This document shows, piece by piece, positions 24,459 to 37,672 of a stretch of 64,000 bases of DNA (positions within the stretch are counted from its first letter, which is position 1; the number at the start of each line of letters is the position of its first letter). The position numbers and the translations under genes are program-made. Below the pieces are notes generated by a model. It worked only from the letters and a program-made list of their open reading frames with translations, was not told the DNA's origin and searched no databases. The stretch comes from Salpingoeca rosetta. Taxonomy: Eukaryota > Protista > Choanoflagellata. The stretch covers positions 952,259-1,016,258 of the forward strand of contig JAWQFM010000023.1 of NCBI GenBank assembly GCA_033442325.1, given 5' to 3'.

Positions 24459-24721
24459 CGTTTGAGCTGCGGCCTCCCACGCCCAAAACCAGTCCCTGAA
24501 GCTGGCGCTGTTGCTGCTGTGCCGGGCGGGATCCTGCCCCCGAGATTCCTCGTCACAGTGCTACTCGCATGATGATCGCTCCCGCTACCACTGCCGCTGT
24601 CCGTGCTACCGCTCCCGCTCCCACCAGCCGTGGTCGTGGTCGGTGTCGGTGTTGGTGTCGTTTGCAGCGTGCCACCACCAGCCGCACGTCGTAGTCGCGG
24701 CCGACCTTTGCCCAGCATCAT
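23192..24721 (-). CDS. Basic Ala/Thr-rich ORF with seven (L/F)GxGRP-type repeats; probably the 5' part of the CCCH gene
   Basis: A 509-aa open frame starting MMLGKGRPRLRR, on the same strand directly upstream of the CCCH exon. The link across a stop at 23192 and the gap is unresolved. Confidence 0.55.
24009..24230. repeat. In-frame 111-bp tandem duplication (37 aa)
   Basis: The unit beginning GATGTCATCTGCATCTCACTTGTTC starts at 24009 and again at 24120. Confidence 0.9.
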
Positions 24722-24968
24722 TACTTACTACGTTTTATGCTGTGTTTTTTATTATTCTGGATTTGGAATGGTGGCGAAAGATGCGGTCATTTTTCGCCGT
24801 GGCACTTCCCCAAAACGGCAACAGCCAAAACAAGCGACGGCCAACCAACCAACACGCCAACTATTCCACCAACACACCAGCACACGCAGCGTCGTCCGGC
24901 CGCTTGCTGTTTTGGGTTTTGTTGTTGTCTCATCGCCTCCAAAGTCCAAGGTGAAGAACGTGAGCGCC

Positions 24969-25988
24969 ATGCCAAGGCAAGTCGGCGCGGCAGGCGGCGA
25001 TCAACAGCCCCTCTCATCGTCAGCAACAACACCAACAACAACAACAACAACACCAACAGCAACAACAGCAATAGCAACAACAGTACCAATACCAACAATA
25101 CCAACAACACCGCCAACACCAGCTTCTACCCCGACACAGCACCGCTTTGGTGGCCCAAGCGTGTATGATTCCACACAACAACAACCGCAGCAGCACCAGC
25201 AGGTGTCATCCATTCCATCATCGTCGCTTCGCTCGGCAGGAGCCCAGAGCTCCTTCCTGCCACCTGCCTTGAGCCAGCCCGACTTTCCGCGCTCCAGCTC
25301 TGCACAGGGCGTGTACGACACCCTGTTCAGCCCAACGTCTTCCGCAATGCCGCAAGGGCAGCCGTGGCAGGCCGCCAGCCCCACCTACTCGATCCCAGGC
25401 ACAGGCCAGCTTGGTGCAAGTGACATGGTGTCCGCAATTGTCACGGCTGCCCCCACCATGAACCCGGCACTGGCCAGCTTTCCCATGAACAGAGGGTACT
25501 ATGACCCAGCCATGCTGGCAGATGCCGGTGGCATGCCCGCACGACCCAAGAAGCACAAGCGAAAGAAGGCCAAGAAGCAGAAGAAGCGCCGCAAGCGGTC
25601 GAAGCCACACTCGCCGGAAAGCGTGCCCGATGCCAGCGGTGGTGTCTACTCCTATGACCCGATGGTCATGTCACCCGCTGGCATGCATGCCCAATTTCCC
25701 GCTTATGGGCAGTCGTCATCATCGTCATCTGCAGCAGCAGCAGCGTACCGCGGGCAGCAGCAGCACTACGCTTATCCCCATCCCGTGGCAGCTGGTGTAT
25801 CGGGTGAGTACATGGCTTCATCGCCCAACCCGGCAGGCCTGACGCCCGCCCATCGTGGTTACCGCACGCCTCCGTCTGGCGCTCCCCCCTCCATGACCAT
25901 GGACCCGTACCAGCCTCAGCAGAGGGACTTTCAGCAAGGAACATTCTCGTTCCATCCACATGTGCCCAACATGCAACAACAACAACAA

Positions 25989-26020
<32 letters not shown>

Positions 26021-26553
26021 CAAGAAGGGTGGGAATGGACGCGGCAGCGCGGGTGCCGTGAATGGCGGTGATGATGATGACGGCGACGACGACGACGATG
26101 ATGATGATGAGGCCATGTTTGGCACGGCACAGAGCGAGCTGCTGCAAGGGCCTGGCATACACCGCAGCCGCCAGCATCAATCAAAGTCATCGGTGTCAAA
26201 TGCCAACCCAGACGCCACCACGGCACCCAAGCAGCCTAACCAGGGCGGCACTGTTGCGTCGACAGCCACGCCGACGGTCAACCACCCTCCACCCGCGCGC
26301 ACGTCAAAGCTGCCGCAGAACCGGCGGGGCAAGGTGCAGATCAAGTACATTGAGAACGCGCCGAAGCGGTACGTGTGCTTCACCAAGCGCAAGGCTGGCC
26401 TGATGAAGAAGGCCCATGAGCTGAGCGTGCTGACGGGCACGGAGGTGCTACTTGTGATTGCGTCTCCGGCAGGAAGCATCTTCACCTTCTCGACACCGCG
26501 GCTGCGACCCCTCATCGCAAAGCCAGCAAGTGAGTCGCGCGCGTGTGTCTGTG

Positions 26554-26597
<44 letters not shown>

Positions 26598-27012
26598 CGT
26601 GTGTGTGTGTGTGTGTCTATCTGTGTCTGTGCGTGTGTGTGTGTCTGTGTCTGTGTCTGTGTCTGTGTCTGTGTCTGTGTGTGTGTGTGGGAGTTGTGTG
26701 AGTAGGCATGTTGTATGTGAAGCATGCCACAACTGTGTGTGAAACATGTGACCACAGTGTGTGCCACCATGACTAGTTGCTCGCCATTTCTGTACGTTTC
26801 CTCACCTCGTCCTCCACCATCAACCACCACCCTCCTCTCCCACACCAGACCGGGAGCGGCTGCAGCGGTACCTGTGCTGCGATGTCGACGATGACGGTGT
26901 GCGCATCCCCATGTCCGATGACAGCGATTATGAGGACGATGCAGAGTTTGAGGCTAACACGCGCAACCGTTCGGGCGCTAACCAGACCTCTGGCCCACAG
27001 GGAGAAGCGTGA
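24969..27012 (+). CDS. SRF: SRF/Mcm1-type (type I) MADS-box transcription factor, 2 exons
   Basis: MADS domain RRGKVQIKYIENAPKRYVCFTKRKAGLMKKAHELSVLTGTEVLLVIASPAGSIFTFSTPRLRPLI. A phase-1 intron (about 26530-26848) leads to NRERLQRYLCC (SAM-helix-like) and TGA at 27012. The ATG at 24969 is inferred. Confidence 0.9.
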
Positions 27013-27608: not shown

Positions 27609-28779
27609 TCACTTCTGCTTGCCCTTCTTGCTGCCCTTCTTCTTGTTCTTCTTCTTCTTCGCCTGCACGCTGAAACGTGACTGCAGCATCTCGTCCAGCA
27701 GCGAAATCAGTGTTTCGATGCCGTACACAAACCCATGGTCAACGCCCCTGTCGCGTATACGTACATGTGAGAGAGTGTGTGTGAGTGAGTGTGTGTGTGT
27801 GTGTGTGTGTTCGTCTGTGTGTTTGGCAGATGGATGAAGATAAGTTTCATGGATGACAAGCACAAATGCACCTTGTTCAACGCACACACGCATATACACA
27901 CGCACGCACGCACACACGCACACACGCACACACGCAAACATTTTACGCACGGTTTTCCGTCTGGGTCGACCGGCGTGGACGTGCGGGCAAAGTCAATGAG
28001 ACGCAACTCCACGCGATTGTCCTGCACGTGATCCGGGTGGTGGCCCTCGTACACAATCAGCAGACTCGTCGAGTAGAACCTGCAGCCGTGGTGATGAAGA
28101 TGACCACGGTAGTGGTGATTCATGGTGATGGTTGGTGATGATTCATGGTGATGGTGGTGGAACCAGGTGCTTGGTAAGATTGTGATGTGCATGTAAATGT
28201 AAATGTCAGTTGTGACCTGCACGATACAAGAGCAGCACAAACACGACAGCACAACATCGCAATGGGTGCACGACGCACCGAAACCCGTCGAGTTTGAGTG
28301 CGTCTTCCTTCAACTCCTGCAGGCGGCGGTGCAAATTCTCAATCACTTTCCACCGAATGCCGCACCCGTTGTCAAAGAACTGCTTCAAACACAGATCCTG
28401 TCACCCACAATCGCAAATGTGCAAAGAATTTGAGGTGGTTGTTGGTTGGTGATTTGGGAGGGGGTGGATGGGGTACTTGGGTTGGTTGATTGGTTACCAT
28501 GTCTTGATCAAACACGTGCAACACCCACATGCGAGGACCGTTCAAACATACACACACACAAACCCACAACCATACATGTGCTGTCAACGCACTTTGAAAG
28601 TGTGTCGCTTGATCTTGCGTCCAAACAGCTTGTCCCAGACCTTGTACCTGCTGGTTGGCGTGGAATACACGCGCATACCGCAGCACCGCACCCCCATAGA
28701 CGCCGATGTTGTTTCGCGGCACTTTTCAATCTGCTTCAGGCGTTTCTCCAACGGCGCATCGTCCGTGTGCTGTCGCCGC

Positions 28780-28848
<69 letters not shown>

Positions 28849-29694
28849 ATGAGGATATCTGCTTCGCCCAACAGTCGCAGCTCTGCCATGTATCATCCTC
28901 CAGAACACAAGCAACAACAACCACCACAACAACCACCACAACAACAACCACAACGACGACAACAGCAGCAAATCGCTCCCGCTCCAACCACCAACAACGA
29001 GTGCAACCAGCGCGTGTCCAAATCTCATACCCATCTTGAGGTCGAGGATGCACGGGTGCTTGAATTCAGCCACGAGGTTCTCCAGCACAAGAAACACCTG
29101 GCCCCTCACATTCGCCCCCTCACGAATGGGTGACGTGGTGCCGGACGTGATGTCCGCTGCTGACGTGACATTTGCTGCTGACGTGACATTTGTTGCTGCT
29201 GCTGCTGCTGCTGTTGGCGATGGTGCGATTGCCGGCGGTGATGGTGGCTGCATTTCAAGGCCTGTGGACGTCGATGTGACTGACGACTCGAGAAGGTGTT
29301 GCGACGACGAGGAAGACAGCGGCTCGCCCGTGTACGCGCTGCTGCTGGTGCTGCTCGCAACAGTAGCAGCGGTGGGGGTGGTGCGGCGTAAGCTGTCGTC
29401 ATCAATATCATCTGCATCCGAGACAGTGATGGATGGACGGCGAGATTGTGTCGTGCGGCGGCTGCCTGCGGGTGTAAATATGCGCGTGTGTGTGTGTATG
29501 TGCGTGTGTGCAGGTGCATGTGTGTGTGTCAAACTTCTGAAAGTGTGCACGTGTGGGTGCAAGTGCGTGTGTAAACCAACACAGCACACACCGACACAGC
29601 ACACAGCAGAATTGCAGCAAAGACATTCGTACGTGGCACGTCGTCGTACTCTTCACCAAGCACCTCTGACAGCAGATCCTTTGTCTGAACACGC

Positions 29695-29740
<46 letters not shown>

Positions 29741-32054
29741 CGTGAAGCGTCAACAAATGCGAACATCGAAGGGACACACACAGCACCAAGTAAAGGGAGC
29801 ATGCACAGAGAAACACGTGTACACGCACACACAGACACACGCACACGCACACGCACACGCACACACACACACACACACACGAAGATCTGCGCGCACGGTA
29901 CTAGCAGACCACCAACCACAAGCAGCACTGCAAGCACCACGCCATCCCCCCCCCCCAGCAGGAAGACGCGGCCACCGACCTCCTTGAGAGCAACGAGAGC
30001 GTTGTCGAGGATGAAGCGTGCCTCGCGCTTCATGGCGGTGTGCACAGGCTCATCGCCATCATTGTCGTCATCTGATGCCGCCGCAACGGCGGGGGCAAGC
30101 GCAGCGAGCAACCCACTCTCCTCGGGGCCTACGTGATCGTGGTTGGTTGGTTGGTTGGTTAGTTGGTTAGTTGGAGAGGGAGAGGAGAAATGGAGGGGAT
30201 AGTGCGCATACGTACACATGCACACATGCACATGATCATGAGCACAGTGATTGTGCTGTTGGTGATGCTTTTGTTGGTAGCAGTGATAGTACGGTGTTGC
30301 ACGAAAATACATGGGTGCAGTCGCTGACGCGCGCGAGCAACGTGACATCCAGAGAACGACAAACAAGTTCCATTCCCCTCCCACATACACACACACACAT
30401 TTCCCACACGACAACGTGTGGCCACAGGCACGGACTGACTTGGCCTCTCGTTGACACGATCCACAAGGGCATTCTTCCACTGCGTGAAGATTGGACGCTG
30501 CATGAAGTAGAAAGGAAGCAGCGTGCCCGTCTTCGTGACCAGCGCAATTGCATGGCCTTTGCGCTGCAGCAGTGGTGGCAATAGCGGTGGTGGTGGTGGC
30601 AGTGGTGGTGGTGGTGGTACATGGTGGTGTGATGCGGAGTGTTAGAGGTGGGCGCTGCGTGCCAAGGTATGGATGAGGAGACACAAGAAAAGCAAGCAAC
30701 AACTGAAAACACTTCAACGAGAACAACGAAACCAGCACCAGCCACCAAATGCTGTGCGGTGGAAAATTCGCAGTGCCGTACATGTGTGAGTACTGCACCT
30801 GTGGCCAGGAGATGGCAGTGAGCCGCTTGTCGTGCGAGAGGATGACGTCTTTGCACTCGGCCACGTCAACTTGGCCCAGCGGCGCTGCGGTCCCGACTGC
30901 CAGGACGACGTGCCTGTGCCAGTACAGCACGTTCTGTTGGGGCGGGGGCGGCGACGCGTGTGGAAGCGGGTTAGAGTTGGGGTGAACCGGTAGTGCGTAG
31001 AACATCACGCGAGAAAAGGGGCATGATAGAGAGCACATGCACGCACGCACACATGCACACGCACACGCACAAGCAAACACGCACACATGCACGCACACGC
31101 ACACATACGCACATGCACACCCTTACACACAAACACGCAGCGCCACCTCCCCTCTCCCTGACGACTGCCAAGCAGCGCGTGCCCGTACGTCCTGCAAGAG
31201 AAGAAAGCGACGGCGCCACTGGCCGTCTGGGGAGAGCATGAGCGCTGTGCCCGTGATGGCCGGTGCCTTGGGGACGTGACGACGTTGGCGCGGTGACCCG
31301 CGGGTCGGCGTGTGCACGGGGGTGGCACGACGGCTGGTGACGGGCGATGCATTGAGCGAGCGGAAGCGCACCACCTCTGGCAGCTGCTCTTCCTGTGCAG
31401 CCTCAAGCTCCGCCCGCTGTTTCTGCAGCGCACGCATTTGCGACTGGCGGTGGTCGTGGTGGTGATGATCGTAGGTGGTCGTAGCAGTGGTGATGGGGAT
31501 GAGATGGTTGTGGGAAGCGATGGAGGGGGGGGGGGAGGGTGCACATCGACATTCAAGCGTGAGTAAGAGAGTGGGAAGAGGGGCTGCGAGCGTTCGTGTT
31601 CCCCACCTCTGTTCTGTTGATGAAGTTGACACGTTCGTAGCGCTCCGGAAGATGGGTGGTCCACGTGCGATCAAGCAGCTGCGTGTCGTCGTCGTTCACA
31701 TCGTCCTCTTCGCAACCAAACGCATACACACAAGGCATGAAGGTGACAGTGTGAGGGGCGCAAGGGTTCGATGGAAAGCCAATAAACATATCCACACATG
31801 TATGCACACGCAACACGCACCACGCAACACGCACCACACACATAAAACATATCAACATGAACACGTATGCACACAGACACACACAACGCACAACACAAGT
31901 GCACATACACGCATGCACATGCATGTGTAACCTCACCTTCGCTCTCGGGCGGTTGCTGGTCTGCTTCCTTCACAAACACCTGGTGATAATACGCTGGAAT
32001 CCATTTCCTGAGAATGGCAAACTGGCCCGCGTAGCCTGTGTTGTGGCCTGTGTG

Positions 32055-32086
<32 letters not shown>

Positions 32087-33386
32087 CGTGTGTGTGTGTG
32101 TGTGTGTGTCGGTATTGGAACGAAACAGCAGCGACGATGTACGATACGCTTCGTCGCCTTGGCCACAGCCACACAGATATGCACACACGCACGCACGCAC
32201 GCGCACACATGCACAACCCAAGTACATATACATACACACGCACGAATCCATATCCACACACTTGCCTCCGTGACGCACCTATTTCGAAGACAAGGCGGTA
32301 GAGGTTGAGTTCGCGATCTGTCATTGGTTTACAGACTTTCCGCTTGTCGCGCCCAAGGGTCATAATGCTGTCACGGTGTCCGGCGACTTGCTCCTCAAAC
32401 CGCCCAAGCACAGCCTTGCCTTCAAGCATGTCTGCACGTCGTGCGCATGAATTGGGTACACATGGAGCGAGAGGAGCACGGTTAGAAGCACGTACACATA
32501 TATACACGCAGGAACACACTTACATACAGAGCAAGCAAGCAAATCAATCAACGAACGAACGAACGAACAGTCAAATGAATAGTCAAATGAACAGTCAAAC
32601 AAACAAACCCAGCGGCCCAGCCGCGTTACGCAACAACGACAACAACACCACCCGAACCACCACCACCACCTCCTCCTCCTCCTCCTCCACCACCTCCTCC
32701 TCCTCCACAATAATGCACGGTGCCGGGCACGTACGGGGCGTGTCTGGCCTGGTGCTGTGGACAGGGGAGGCATCAAGAGCCTCCGGATCGCTCTTGGAGG
32801 CGTGCTGCCACTCCTTCTCGCTCGAGAAACTTCTGCGATCCTTCAGAAGCAGAAATTTGAACTCTTCAAGCGGAATATCGCGCCCTTCTCCCCGCCGCCC
32901 CCACGTCACAACCTGAACATGCAGATGAGAGCATGACAGGATGGGTGGGTCGTTGGTTGGTTGGTTGTTGGGGTTGTGCAAGCACTGCGTCCGTATGCAA
33001 GAGGCACATGCATACCGATGTATGCAAACACACACACACACACACTCGCGCAAATATTCAAAAGCACGCGCACATACGCCATACACACGCGTCCACTCAC
33101 ACATCCACTCACACGCGAACATACATTGACAGTCTCCCGCGTTCACAGACGCCACGCACATGCGCACCTGGCCTGGCCCCGGGATATCGAGGGCAAAGAC
33201 GGGCTGCAGGGTGCCGCTCATGACGGCTGGGTCTGATGGAAAGCCATACTCCTCGGGGTCGGGGTTGTACACGAGCCGAACAAACGGCGCGTTGTTCTGC
33301 TCGTGCAGCTCAAAGGCGAGAAAAGCGGCAAACGACGGCACAGGGAAGTCCCGGTAGCCTGTGATCGAGCACGTGTGTTGTTTGTT

Positions 33387-33461
<75 letters not shown>

Positions 33462-34942
33462 ATGTGTGCGTGCGTGCGTGCGCGTGAGTGTGTGATACGT
33501 GTGCACAGTTGCTGTTGAAGAAGCAAAGGTAGCATATGCGAAAACTCCATCGACCACGCATGCTTCCACGCGTCACGAACACAGTTGACGCACCGAGGTG
33601 TGCCAGCATGGCCATTAGGGTGTTGTCGTGTGCGCTGAAGATTGTCATTGTTCCACCGCGCTCCGCCGTTTGCGACACGCCCTCAAAGTTGCGCACAATT
33701 GTCGCTGACGATGCGGTGATTGGTGGTTTGTTGGTGGTCCATGTGAGTCGTGCTGGAAAGCACTAAGGCAATCACACCTACGCGCGGACCCGCACATCCA
33801 TACACACACGCTTACATGCACATACAGGCACTCACGCCTCCACCCTCACCCCAACATACACACACGCACACGCACGCACGCACACACACACACACATGTC
33901 CCTACACGCCTGCCTGCACCCCTTACCTGGGAGCGTGCCGGCTGCAAGGCGCGCGAGTCTGCGCTGTGTTGCAATATCGTCACCACAGTATCGCAGATTG
34001 CATATGTGCGTTGTGATTTCCTTCAACAGCTGCTCATCGTCCTCCTCAAACACAATCCCGCTCGAATTCAACAGCAGCTGCCGATGGCGCGTGATGGAGT
34101 GATGGCGTGGTGCGGGTGCAACGTGTTGGGTGGGTGAGGCATTGATCATGACATGTGTGACCGTGATGGAGTGATGGATGTGAAGATACAGCGGAAGAGA
34201 CACACGTGGGCGGATGGTGACGGCTCATACAGGGTAACGTGCTGCGCCACGCTTGATCGTTGAACGCATCATGATGTAACATGAAAAAAGGCAAAACGTT
34301 GCTGGCGTGCATAGTGATGTGATGACTCACATCCATGCTGTGGGACCGCTCAATGTTGACTTGCTGCGCAACGCTCTGCAAATTCCTCAACGCCTGAACA
34401 TAGAGAGGGAGAGAGGGGGGAGAGGGAGAGAGTGTGTGTGTGTTTGAGCGCGCGAACACCACGTGAGACAATTGATGCAGGCTGCTGATGCATCTCAACA
34501 TCACGATATCCATCACCATATCCATCATCACCACCGCCATCAAGGCCGCGTACCGTCTGGTATCCGTTGGCTGGGTTGATCTTTTCAAACTGCGTCATGC
34601 GCCAGAGCTTGTCGATGAGTTTTCGGCAGCGCACATCCTGCGCCCACTGCTCAAATTGCAGCGCTGCCGGGGTGAAGAAGTGATAGTGGTGGTGGTGGTG
34701 GCGGTGATGGGATGAGAGTGTGTTTGGGTGTTAGCTAGGAAACAGTGTATACTTGAGGCGTCCATGCACACACACACACATACATACATACACAAGCAGG
34801 CAGTGGGGTGCCAAGCTCACATTCATCAAAGACGCGTGTCTTTAGGGCGTTGTATGCGTCGTTTGACTTGAAGCCGTGCAGCAGTGGAGAGTAATTCTCG
34901 CTCGCCACGTGGATCGGCAATGAGTCTTCGCAAGTGATGTGC

Positions 34943-34989
<47 letters not shown>

Positions 34990-37384
34990 GCGGGTGTGTG
35001 GAACAGAGATGGGGGTTGGTGAGGACATGTGATGGTAACAAATGCAAATGGCAAATAAGGCAACAGACACCACCGCCACCACAGCCACCACAGCCACCAA
35101 CACCACCACAGCCACCAACACCGGCAACATGCACTGCTCACTTCCTGTGAACGTGGGGGACTTTGCGGCCTGTACGGGCGGAACCTTCTGGCTGGTGGAG
35201 AAGCGTCCGTGGAGATCGAGGCGGAAGGACGGGCTCGTGCCAGGAAACATCCCCAGCAGCAGGCTGCACTCGGCCCAAGGGAGGTGTGTGCGTATGTGTA
35301 CGTATGTGTGCGCGCGTATGTATATGTGTATGTGTATGTGTATGTGTACGTATGTGTGCGCGCGTATGTGCATATGTATGTGTATGTGTGTGTGTGAGTG
35401 CGAAGATGAGTATTCGAAAGGGCGAGTGTATGAAGGTGTAGGATTGGCTTCAAGACAGCCAAGTTTCAGACACCCACAAGCACACACGCACGCACACACA
35501 AAGCACACAACTTTCAGCAGCAGCATGATCACCTCACCTCTGTGCAGACATGAGGGCGCGGTCGGCGTGGGAGGTGTACGTTTGTACACGAAGACTAAGG
35601 TCTGGGCACTGCTCGTCAAGCAGCTGCTCGTGGTGGAGGTACTTGTGGCGCAGCTTCCGGCCCAGCGAGATGTGCTGCTGCATGCCCACGGCAGTGAGGC
35701 TGTGGTGGGGTGGTGTGTTGGTGTGCGCGACCATGGGGTGAGTGGGTTGGATATTGGCGTGGGGGCGTGGTGATGATGTGACGACATGATGGCGTGACGA
35801 CGCGAAGGCGTGGCGCATGCGGCCAACGAACAATAATTTACACACACACACACACACACACAAACACACAGACACACACACAAATGCACACACCCACACA
35901 CAATCACACACACAAACACACAGACACACACACAAATGCACACACCCACACACAATCACACACACACACACAAACGCACACGCACACACAGCCCGCTCAC
36001 CGGCCGCCAAACGACTGCCAGAAGTGCGGCTCCTTCGGCCAGTGCTCATCGCGGGGAAACGGTTTGAGCGGGAAGCGAGCGCCGTGTCGCGTGATGACGA
36101 CGACGCTGCGGATGGTGTGGCGGGCAGATGCCATCCACGCCCAGCGGCGCGAGAGCACGCGGCTTGTCTGGTACAGGCGGTGGTACACGGCGTTGTAGTC
36201 GATGCGGCCCGTGTTGTTGGGGTCAACGAGGCCAACCAGAAACTGCAGCTCTGTGTTTGGGAGTGGGCACACGGTGGAGATCATGGCAGCAAACTGGCTG
36301 CCGGTCAAGTAGCCATAGGACTTGAGGTCGTGCTGCTTGAACAGCAGCCTGCCACACGTTTGTGCATTATGTATGCGTTGAGGAGAAAAGGGGGTGGGAG
36401 GTCGTCAGGGGTGGGTGGAAGTTGGGAAGCCACACAGGCATGACTTGTGCATTCACGAGGTGGAGAGAACAGCTGCACACGCATGCATTCATGCATACGT
36501 GCACGTTCACGCACACGCATACATACACACACAGACACCTGAGGTTGATGTTGATGCGGTGGAGCTGGTAGACGACGTGCTCGACAAGGATGTCCTGCAT
36601 AATCTCCATGAACTCAATCTCCTTGCGGTCGGCGAGGAAGTAGTTGCAGATCGCCTCCACATCTGCTTGGCTCGCGGTGTTCGTGCACGTGGACAGCAAA
36701 TGTGCAAGCTTGGCGCGATGTTCCTCTGCCATGTGTGTGTGTGTGTGTGTATGTATGTTTGTGTGTGTGTGTGTGTGTGTGCGTGTGTGTGTGTGTGTGT
36801 GCGTATGCAAAGTGCGCTTTCGTGTGATGTGTGTGCGAGCAAATGGAAGGCATGCAGATCTGTTTGCAAGGTGGAGGCATTTGCCGCACCTGGGGAGGAA
36901 GCGCCCGGGGACCCATCGTCGGATGCCATCTGCTCAAAGGCCTGCTTGAGCGACATGCCCTTGTCTCGCATCTCCTCAAACATGCGGTGGACGACGGTAT
37001 GTGCGTACCTCTCCTCCTCCGTCAGCTGACAACACACACACACACACACACACACACACCAGTCAGAGGGATGGAGTAAGAGAGACGAGGGGTGAGAAGA
37101 GGGACGAAGGGAGAAGACGCAACAAACGCCAGGGGAGTGAACACGCTTGTCGTATGTGTGATGCTGAAGAAGCAATCGCTTGCATGGGCAAGCACATGGC
37201 AAGTGCACCCAACCGAGCCAGTTCGTCAAACCAGTCAGTGGGCCATTGAGCCAATGACCCTCGATCACATGACACATCTCATATCGCATCCACAATGGCT
37301 TACCTTGTCCTCTGAGAATGCCAGCGAGGAGGCCGTGGGCTCCACCCCGCCTGCATCCTTGCCCACCAATCCCAAGCGCTCCAT
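27609..37384 (-). CDS. Multidomain protein: EF-hands + histidine acid phosphatase (His_Phos_2) + IP6K-type inositol polyphosphate kinase with inserted PH domain + polybasic tail (20+ exons)
   Basis: EF loops [12 protein letters not shown] and [12 protein letters not shown]. Phosphatase motifs RHGARFP (36089-36069), [29 protein letters not shown] and IFSAHDNTL (HD at about 33630-33625). Kinase motifs [37 protein letters not shown] (29055-29031), [15 protein letters not shown] and [11 protein letters not shown]. Intron phases were consistent at the junctions I traced (5' exons, phosphatase-kinase link, PH region); a few internal phosphatase and 3' kinase exons were not traced base by base. Confidence 0.85.
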
Positions 37385-37672
37385 CGTGCATGCGGTGGTG
37401 GTGGTGGTGGTGGGTGGTGTTGCTGTAACGGCAGGCAACAGCGACCGTGTTGTTGTTGTGTGATATTTTGCGCCCCAACAACAACGAAGATGGCGGATGT
37501 GTGAGTTGCGTGCGTGTGCGCGTGAGTTGCGTGTGTGAGTGTCTGTGTATGTGTGTGTGCCTGGTCTCCGCCTGCCTTTGGTTGTCGCCGCTGTCTCCGT
37601 TTGCCTTGTACCTCGGCCTCGCGTGGGTTGAGACCCTGACATGTGCGTGTGCGTGTGCTCGGTAGGGACTCG

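Follow-up and report, generated by a model that had tools for sequence, protein, structure and literature searches.

A candidate PH-like module within the catalytic domain of an IPK-family kinase in the choanoflagellate Salpingoeca rosetta

Can a kinase that acts on inositol phosphates carry a PH-like module inside its own catalytic domain? This question is raised by a gene of Salpingoeca rosetta located in the window analysed here, a stretch of 64,000 nucleotides (nt; JAWQFM010000023.1, positions 952,259-1,016,258; all coordinates below are window positions). The original prediction, which was made from the sequence letters, had proposed that three in-phase exons of this gene encode a PH domain inserted in the catalytic domain of an IP6K. 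IP6K-type kinases make 5-InsP7, and the best-known action of this product is competition with phosphatidylinositol trisphosphate (PtdInsP3) at PH domains (PMC13573144). In this report, we examine the transcript, the family of the kinase, and the conservation and possible fold of the inserted stretch, and on balance we lean towards a reading in which the three exons (D, E and F) form one PH-like module in a loop of the kinase, with a proposed regulatory role.

The gene is a multi-exon gene on the minus strand, and its introns are short, of the GT-AG type and rich in CA/GT microsatellites (Table 1). Exon borders were set from the reading frame and the splice sites and were then compared with RNA, namely data of three studies, in two runs as raw RNA-seq reads and in two as transcript contigs (X20, X21, X4 and X6). 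The joints listed for these runs, each written as its two joined positions, include 31937/31707, 31607/31443, 31189/30933 and 30799/30563, and two further joints are not displayed; the borders A/B, F/G, G/G', G'/H and H/I were fixed by transcript-contig pieces and loose ends. Exons D, E and F are real, are expressed and are present in the mRNA at every listed joint; their joints occur in four runs, and no exon-skipping joint is among those listed for these runs, so that the skipping against which the original prediction had guarded was not seen. The D/E and E/F introns are both GT-AG and in phase 0. In addition, the peptides quoted for the three in-phase exons proved to be exact translations of 31443-31189, 30933-30799 and 30563-30440 on the minus strand, and the span first given for the domain, 30446-31270, agrees with a module made of 31257-31189, 30933-30799 and 30563 to about 30446.

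The first description had missed that the gene does not begin with exon A. Exon A is spliced in frame at 32431 to 32735, and this joint leads to phosphatase exons: the upstream joints 32431/32735, 32910/33166, 33357/33593, 33704/33927 and 34077/34331 keep a continuous frame, and pieces of the Pfam family His_Phos_2 follow one another in order (profile positions 1-21, 55-110 and 325-354, of which only 55-110 is over the cut-off). Marks of a phosphatase are an RHG exon near 36000-36100 and SAHDNT at 33593-33704, in a transcript span of 32431-37400 on the minus strand. The larger protein is a fusion of a histidine acid phosphatase with an IPK-type kinase, the kinase forming its C-terminal half, and the RNA joints support this for the part examined. 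The same upstream span (within 32431-37400, minus strand) also holds a possible EF-hand-like stretch, seen as a weak Pfam match only.

The kinase belongs to the IPK family. The cut-off of Pfam IPK (PF03770) was passed by the tail of exon H (23.8 bits, profile positions 1-21) and by exon I (39.9 bits), and a six-frame scan of the genome gave 55.4, 34.2 and 30.7 bits at 28593-28781, 27974-28090 and 29023-29094, respectively, with the exon H match covering profile positions 1-24. The motifs of the family are the PxxxDxKxG inositol-phosphate site, SSLL, and IDF(A/G) with its metal-binding Asp (PMC3090757). This gene has PCILDLKMG in exon H, and STSLL (TSLL for SSLL) and LIDFAR in exon K, the latter two invariant in the relative described below and followed in the last exon by a C-terminal tail motif of the family type. 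Because these family motifs are present, the kinase looks catalytically complete.

The more specific assignment to IP6K fared less well: membership of the IPK family is borne out by Pfam, but IP6K over IPMK is not established. Sequence searches of the PDB with exons I and K matched IPMK chains only (yeast 2iew, E 1e-6; human; plant), with no IP6K or IP3K chain among the matches. A word search with the hinge region gave no candidate among named IPK relatives, and a feature search of the ESM Atlas with exon I and exon E gave no usable match. The exon I pattern RQHxDDA...KC...TSA..GVR.CGM.VY is one that we take to resemble IP6K1. Since the PDB matches are to IPMK only, we label the gene as a member of the IPK family that appears IP6K-like. 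At least two further IPK-family genes occur in the genome (G000:C24:63531-64109, locus L080; and G000:C3:64846-64941), and the gene studied here therefore need not be the sole or main IP6K; the first of these, with MCKPASPKELLFYE, PCVLDLKMGTRTY, YRFYSSSLLLVYD and DLRMIDFANT, also looks IP6K-like.

In mammalian IP6Ks, the N-lobe and the hinge strand are separated by a long insert that is not conserved, and the module of S. rosetta would occupy a corresponding place. By direct reading, exon A holds the motifs QVAGH, VCKP and RELNLY and exon B holds WIPAYY, which we take to be the IPK N-lobe. The Pfam IPK model begins only at the hinge, so the N-lobe exons fall outside it; for the CKPxxxxELxxY motif of exon A, pairwise comparison with the N-terminal exon of a second IPK gene in the genome gave a weak match (E 0.007), and a PDB sequence search with exon A gave no kinase match. 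The placement originally proposed, between WIPAYY and the hinge exon, agrees with the exons as now delimited, WIPAYY being in exon B and FLVLENL/PCILDLKMG in exon H. The insert between the N-lobe-like exons and the hinge comprises about 400 residues and is partly of low complexity, and the module appears to be located within it, with thin support on the N-lobe side.

We then consider whether the three exons resemble a PH domain. All profile, search and fold tests of the module were made exon-wise, on pieces of 23, 45 and 41 residues (the end of exon D, exon E and exon F). The PH template was an alignment of 25 single-exon PH domains from the same genome, and each hhalign query was a two-sequence alignment of the window exon and its counterpart in the relative. 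The end of exon D aligned to template positions 15-26, which hold the beta2 consensus WK.RWFVL.D (P 4.4e-4), exon E aligned to positions 36-57, the G.I.L....V segment (P 0.0028), and exon F placed TQWKNAL on the helix W...L at positions 86-92, weakly (P 0.16); the three are colinear on the template, with a Fisher's combined P of 2.7e-5. The scores of the exon D end and of exon E were reached by 0 of 300 column shuffles each. Scores did not exceed 11.7 with control templates of C2 and SH2 domains from this genome, nor 10.8 when six other exon pieces of the gene were set against the PH template, versus 19.4 and 18.0 for the two PH matches. Thus, the profile-profile and shuffle results suggest a PH-like pattern above chance. 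As for structure, AlphaFold2 was run on single exon peptides, and exon F alone gave strands at residues 4-9 and 15-20 and a helix at 23-38, with a mean predicted local distance difference test (pLDDT) score of 84.3; this strand-turn-strand-helix arrangement would be the one expected of the C-terminal third of a PH fold.

Conservation provides a second line of evidence. Exon E is single-copy in the genome. An exhaustive HMMER search with exon E over 1.84 billion representative proteins found one true relative, P0003, an open reading frame that crosses an intron-to-exon border of a 638-nt ENA contig (L001); the public protein of the gene itself was not among the matches, and a word search with the 483-residue stop-free frame of exon E among proteins of 266-845 residues found nothing. 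A metagenome scan then yielded a 2,984-nt contig (L002, MDTD01126819.1) from an organism nearly identical to that of L001. Orthologues of exons D, E, F, G, G', H, I, J and K are present on this contig, with the D/E and E/F introns at the same positions as in the window. Identity to the relative is 49-54% for the three exons and, piece by piece, 39-51% for the module, with a ratio of nonsynonymous to synonymous divergence (dN/dS) of 0.2-0.46 at saturated synonymous divergence (dS), values that resemble those of kinase exon J. Exon E is 49-51% identical; exon F is 49% identical, with KNALVDR invariant and W replaced by M; and at the end of exon D the residues W, R, R and LLL are invariant. The kinase exons I, J and K are 73%, 59% and 81% identical, respectively. 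The helix-like stretches of exons D and G, outside the module, are also conserved. In exon H, the Ser/Thr/Ala-rich part cannot be aligned to the relative and the last 26 residues are nearly identical. Because about half of the module remains identical at saturated dS while the low-complexity linker of exon H is unalignable, the module, judging from this divergence, is under purifying selection. It appears to be known only from one small lineage, that is, the organism of the window and one metagenome relative.

The comparison with the relative also revealed a difference in gene structure. L002 has no F/G intron, so that exons F and G form one exon (L002 884-1141 versus window 29980-30563); the 311-nt window intron at 30129-30439 has no counterpart in L002, which points to intron gain or loss between close relatives.

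Three other matches of the HMMER search, the bacterial repeat proteins P0001, P0002 and P0004, were rejected as spurious because each match was short and its score was summed over 5-14 stretches. P0002 has WD40 repeats and P0004 has AAPLGQLDPGACEDVTI-type repeats; P0001, a protein of 6,510 residues with 14 matched stretches, was set aside with the other bacterial matches on these grounds. Residues 15-33 of exon E (30836-30892) are identical at 12 of 19 positions to a motif repeated many times in P0004 (AAPLGQLDPGACEDVTIS), and the summed score was therefore inflated; the sequence of the relative is less similar to this motif, and we judge the likeness to be due to chance. A SopA_C match in Pfam (E 0.11) was likewise put down to chance.

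Several results weigh against a PH fold and have to be set beside the evidence for it. Pfam reported no PH family for any of the exons, even at E 10; this test was weak because the module is cut into such short pieces. None of the 148 matches listed in a six-frame PF00169 scan of the genome lies at this locus, and a hidden Markov model of the genome's own PH domains, scanned over the exons and all open reading frames of the window, scored the module exons at background. Thus, of the PH pattern as first described, WxxRxxxL and PLGxIxL stand out above shuffles, the C2 and SH2 templates and the other exons, but no exon matches Pfam PH. The C-terminal helix with a conserved Trp also held in part: the hairpin and helix appear in the AlphaFold2 model of exon F, but its hhalign score was reached by 9 of 60 shuffles, which is background level, and the Trp of FTQWKNAL, invariant in the 25 reference PH domains, is Met in the sole relative (FSLMKNAL). 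Exon E alone was modelled with a pLDDT of 63 and mixed secondary structure, with a helix where beta5 is expected. A Foldseek search with the 41-residue model of exon F found nothing significant, the fragment being too small, and a PDB sequence search with exons E and F found nothing relevant; folding the three exon peptides as separate chains gave a score of 0.06, which is evidence neither way. High-affinity phosphoinositide-binding PH domains have a K-Xn-(K/R)-X-R motif across beta1-beta2, of which the (K/R)-X-R half is present and conserved here (WRRRF / WRKRH). The proposed beta1 (TALMLSP) has no Lys, just as the original prediction had remarked, and the relative has an Arg nearby (YMRAP). 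Taking both sides together, we consider a PH-like fold of the module probable from the exon-wise evidence.

On this reading, a single folded, PH-like module of about 106-110 residues would be built from the end of exon D (beta1-beta2), exon E (beta3-beta5) and exon F (the beta6-beta7 hairpin plus a capping helix), and it would be placed in the long loop that leads from the N-lobe-like exons to the hinge/PxxxDxKxG strand of an IPK-family, IP6K-like kinase. The conserved basic residues, which are the W-R-x-R of beta2, an Arg after beta3, DKR, and R-[KR]-G-H before beta6, appear to cluster where PH domains usually hold anionic ligands. By analogy, we propose that the module may bind an anionic ligand, either a phosphoinositide head group or a soluble inositol poly- or pyrophosphate, via the W-R-x-R of beta2 and nearby Arg/Lys residues. 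The site would be of low-to-moderate affinity in the most economical reading, and ligand binding might localise the enzyme or tune the activity of the kinase, and perhaps also of the phosphatase. Membrane targeting or InsP7 feedback by the module is pure conjecture.

A serious rival to ligand binding, possible though in our view improbable, is that the fold is PH-like and serves in protein-protein or intramolecular docking, without binding lipid or inositol phosphate, for example by packing against the kinase or against the phosphatase upstream of it and so coupling the two activities. For most PH domains, phosphoinositide binding is weak or absent, and the canonical beta1 Lys is absent here; moreover, two conserved, constrained helix-like stretches flank the module, and two catalytic domains in one protein could need coupling. 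The clustering of the basic residues (W-R-x-R, the Arg after beta3, DKR and R-[KR]-G-H) at the usual PH ligand sites would speak against a role in docking alone.

We regard it as unlikely that the module is folded and conserved but not PH-like, that is, a lineage-specific, beta-rich insert with another or a new fold, whose motif matches would be generic beta-hairpin patterns. The blank Pfam results for every exon, the lack of any relative beyond one sister organism among 1.84 billion representatives, the background-level PH match and non-conserved helix Trp of exon F, and the poor folding of exon E alone would all suit this explanation. However, the exon D end and exon E beat all 300 shuffles and all control templates, the three pieces stand in the right order and nearly contiguously (15-26, 36-57) on the PH profile, and the hairpin and helix of exon F suit that position of the fold. 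That there is no domain at all, the stretch being part of a long, mostly disordered IP6K-type insert with a PH pattern by chance, would fit the partly low-complexity neighbourhood of about 400 residues and the blank per-exon family scans but is very improbable given about 50% identity to the relative at saturated synonymous divergence where the true low-complexity linker is unalignable, the regular secondary structure of exon F alone at a pLDDT of 84, and profile scores of the exon D end and exon E far above shuffles.

How does a PH-like module in this position compare with known systems? IP6K1-3 and Kcs1 (PF03770) share the PxxxDxKxG, SSLL-type, IDF and C-terminal motifs with the flanking exons of this gene; in contrast to these enzymes, the kinase of S. 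rosetta has an insert of about 400 residues that holds a conserved, folded-looking module, and it is fused to a histidine acid phosphatase. Classical PH domains (PF00169), such as that of Akt, show the same order of elements, with a W-[RK]-x-R-x-[FL]-x-L beta2, a G-x-[IV]-x-[LV] beta4, and a hairpin with a C-terminal helix, whereas the module has no significant family match and no beta1 Lys, and its helix Trp is not kept in the relative. In addition, the PH domain of a classical kinase such as Akt lies beside the catalytic domain, whereas the module here interrupts that domain. Split or inserted PH domains in PLC-gamma, syntrophin and myosin X are precedents for domain-in-domain arrangements; in those proteins the PH domain is the interrupted host, whereas the PH-like module would be a guest in a small-molecule kinase. 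In the full-text literature, we found no description of an IPK-family kinase with a PH-like domain inside its catalytic domain; the literature on choanoflagellate IP6K gave nothing that describes this arrangement, and a survey of inositol phosphate kinases across eukaryotes mentions neither choanoflagellates nor such an architecture. With respect to possible ligands, 5PP-InsP5 competes with PtdInsP3, here PtdIns(3,4,5)P3, at the PH domain of Akt (PMC13573144).

The closest functional precedent, by analogy, may be the inositol-pyrophosphate enzyme PPIP5K. Its phosphatase domain is overlapped by a PH-like polyphosphoinositide-binding element (PBD), and PtdIns(4,5)P2 alters the ratio of its kinase to its phosphatase activity (PMC5857911). 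PPIP5K/Vip1 combines a kinase, a histidine-acid-phosphatase-type domain and an embedded PH-like lipid-binding element, and the same three kinds of part are found in this gene. However, PPIP5K has a kinase of the ATP-grasp type and not an IPK, and its PBD coincides with part of the phosphatase domain, not of the kinase domain. No relation to PPIP5K was found at the sequence level, and any likeness would thus be convergent. It is a doubtful speculation that PPIP5K-like logic was independently assembled in a choanoflagellate, with a histidine acid phosphatase, an inositol (pyro)phosphate kinase of the IPK type and a PH-like sensor in the loop from N-lobe to hinge, such that a ligand (a phosphoinositide or the enzyme's own product) tips the enzyme between making and degrading inositol pyrophosphates.

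If both the fold and the ligand proved true, the gene would offer a natural case, in a close relative of animals, of inositol-pyrophosphate synthesis that is gated by a ligand or anchored to a membrane, and it would parallel by convergence the kinase/phosphatase/PBD arrangement seen in PPIP5K (PMC5857911); if the fold were not confirmed, the result would be a lineage-specific structured insert only. Salpingoeca rosetta can be transfected, and the idea is therefore testable.

Table 1. Exons of the phosphatase-kinase gene and the proposed parts of the PH-like module, in transcript order (window positions; joints as joined positions)
Feature	Positions	Strand	Content	Support
Upstream exons, same transcript	32735-32910, 33166-33357, 33593-33704, 33927-34077, on past 34331	-	C-terminal part of histidine acid phosphatase (branch 2)	
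Exon A	32279-32431	-	N-lobe-like start of kinase	Joint 32431/32735 to upstream exon 32735-32910; frame continuous
Exon B	31937-32047	-	WIPAYY; last N-lobe-like strand before insert	Joint 31937/31707; loose end 32278 to 32047
Exon C	31607-31707	-	Acidic stretch first; opening part of long insert	RNA joints and frame
Exon D, non-module part	31258-31443	-	Conserved helix-like stretch, then Pro/Arg-rich linker into module	Joint 31607/31443
Module part 1 (last 23 codons of exon D)	31189-31257	-	Proposed beta1-beta2; W-R-x-R motif	Joint 31189/30933
Module part 2 (exon E, 45 codons)	30799-30933	-	Proposed beta3-beta5; APLGQVDV motif	Joints on both sides
Module part 3 (exon F, 41 codons + 1 base)	30440-30563	-	Proposed beta6-beta7 hairpin and C-terminal helix	Joint 30799/30563
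Exon G	29980-30128	-	Linker and conserved helix-like stretch	Transcript contigs: 201-nt record gap = G + G'
Exon G' (17 codons + 1 base)	29633-29684	-		Loose end 29632 reads into exon H; frame
Exon H	29031-29465	-	About 118 Ser/Thr/Ala-rich low-complexity residues, then hinge FLVLENL and PxxxDxKxG (PCILDLKMG)	
Exon I	28593-28780	-	Kinase core	Pfam IPK; contiguous transcript piece 28600-28772
Exon J, predicted borders	28279-28397	-	Inositol-phosphate-binding helices	GT-AG sites
Exon K, predicted borders	27951-28079	-	SSLL-type motif and IDF (RLIDFAR)	Pfam IPK profile positions 122-162
Last exon, predicted borders	27609-27747	-	Lys-rich tail; stop TGA 27611-27609	

A few further observations concern the RNA and the neighbourhood of the gene. 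Between 28688 and 34036, all RNA runs share 17 fixed exonic differences from the window, of which 14 are synonymous and three change an amino acid; the changes are confined to linker exons G and H, with none in exons B-F. These fixed differences indicate that the assembly and the RNA derive from strains or haplotypes that differ slightly. A further site, 28688 (Arg to Trp), is variable, in only 6 of 48 reads of one RNA run. A (CAA/CAC)n-type repeat at 28912-28960, within the H/I intron, attracts very many reads and contigs, with joints that go back on themselves and loose ends; this pile-up is probably due to the same repeat in other transcripts or to length variation rather than to a feature of the gene. 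Adjoining the gene, on the plus strand at 24603-26705, lies an open frame of 700 residues that ends in a MADS-box-like stretch (RGKVQIKYIENAPKRYVCFTKRKAGLMKKAHELSVLTGTEVLLVIAS) and is probably an exon of an SRF/MEF2-type transcription factor.

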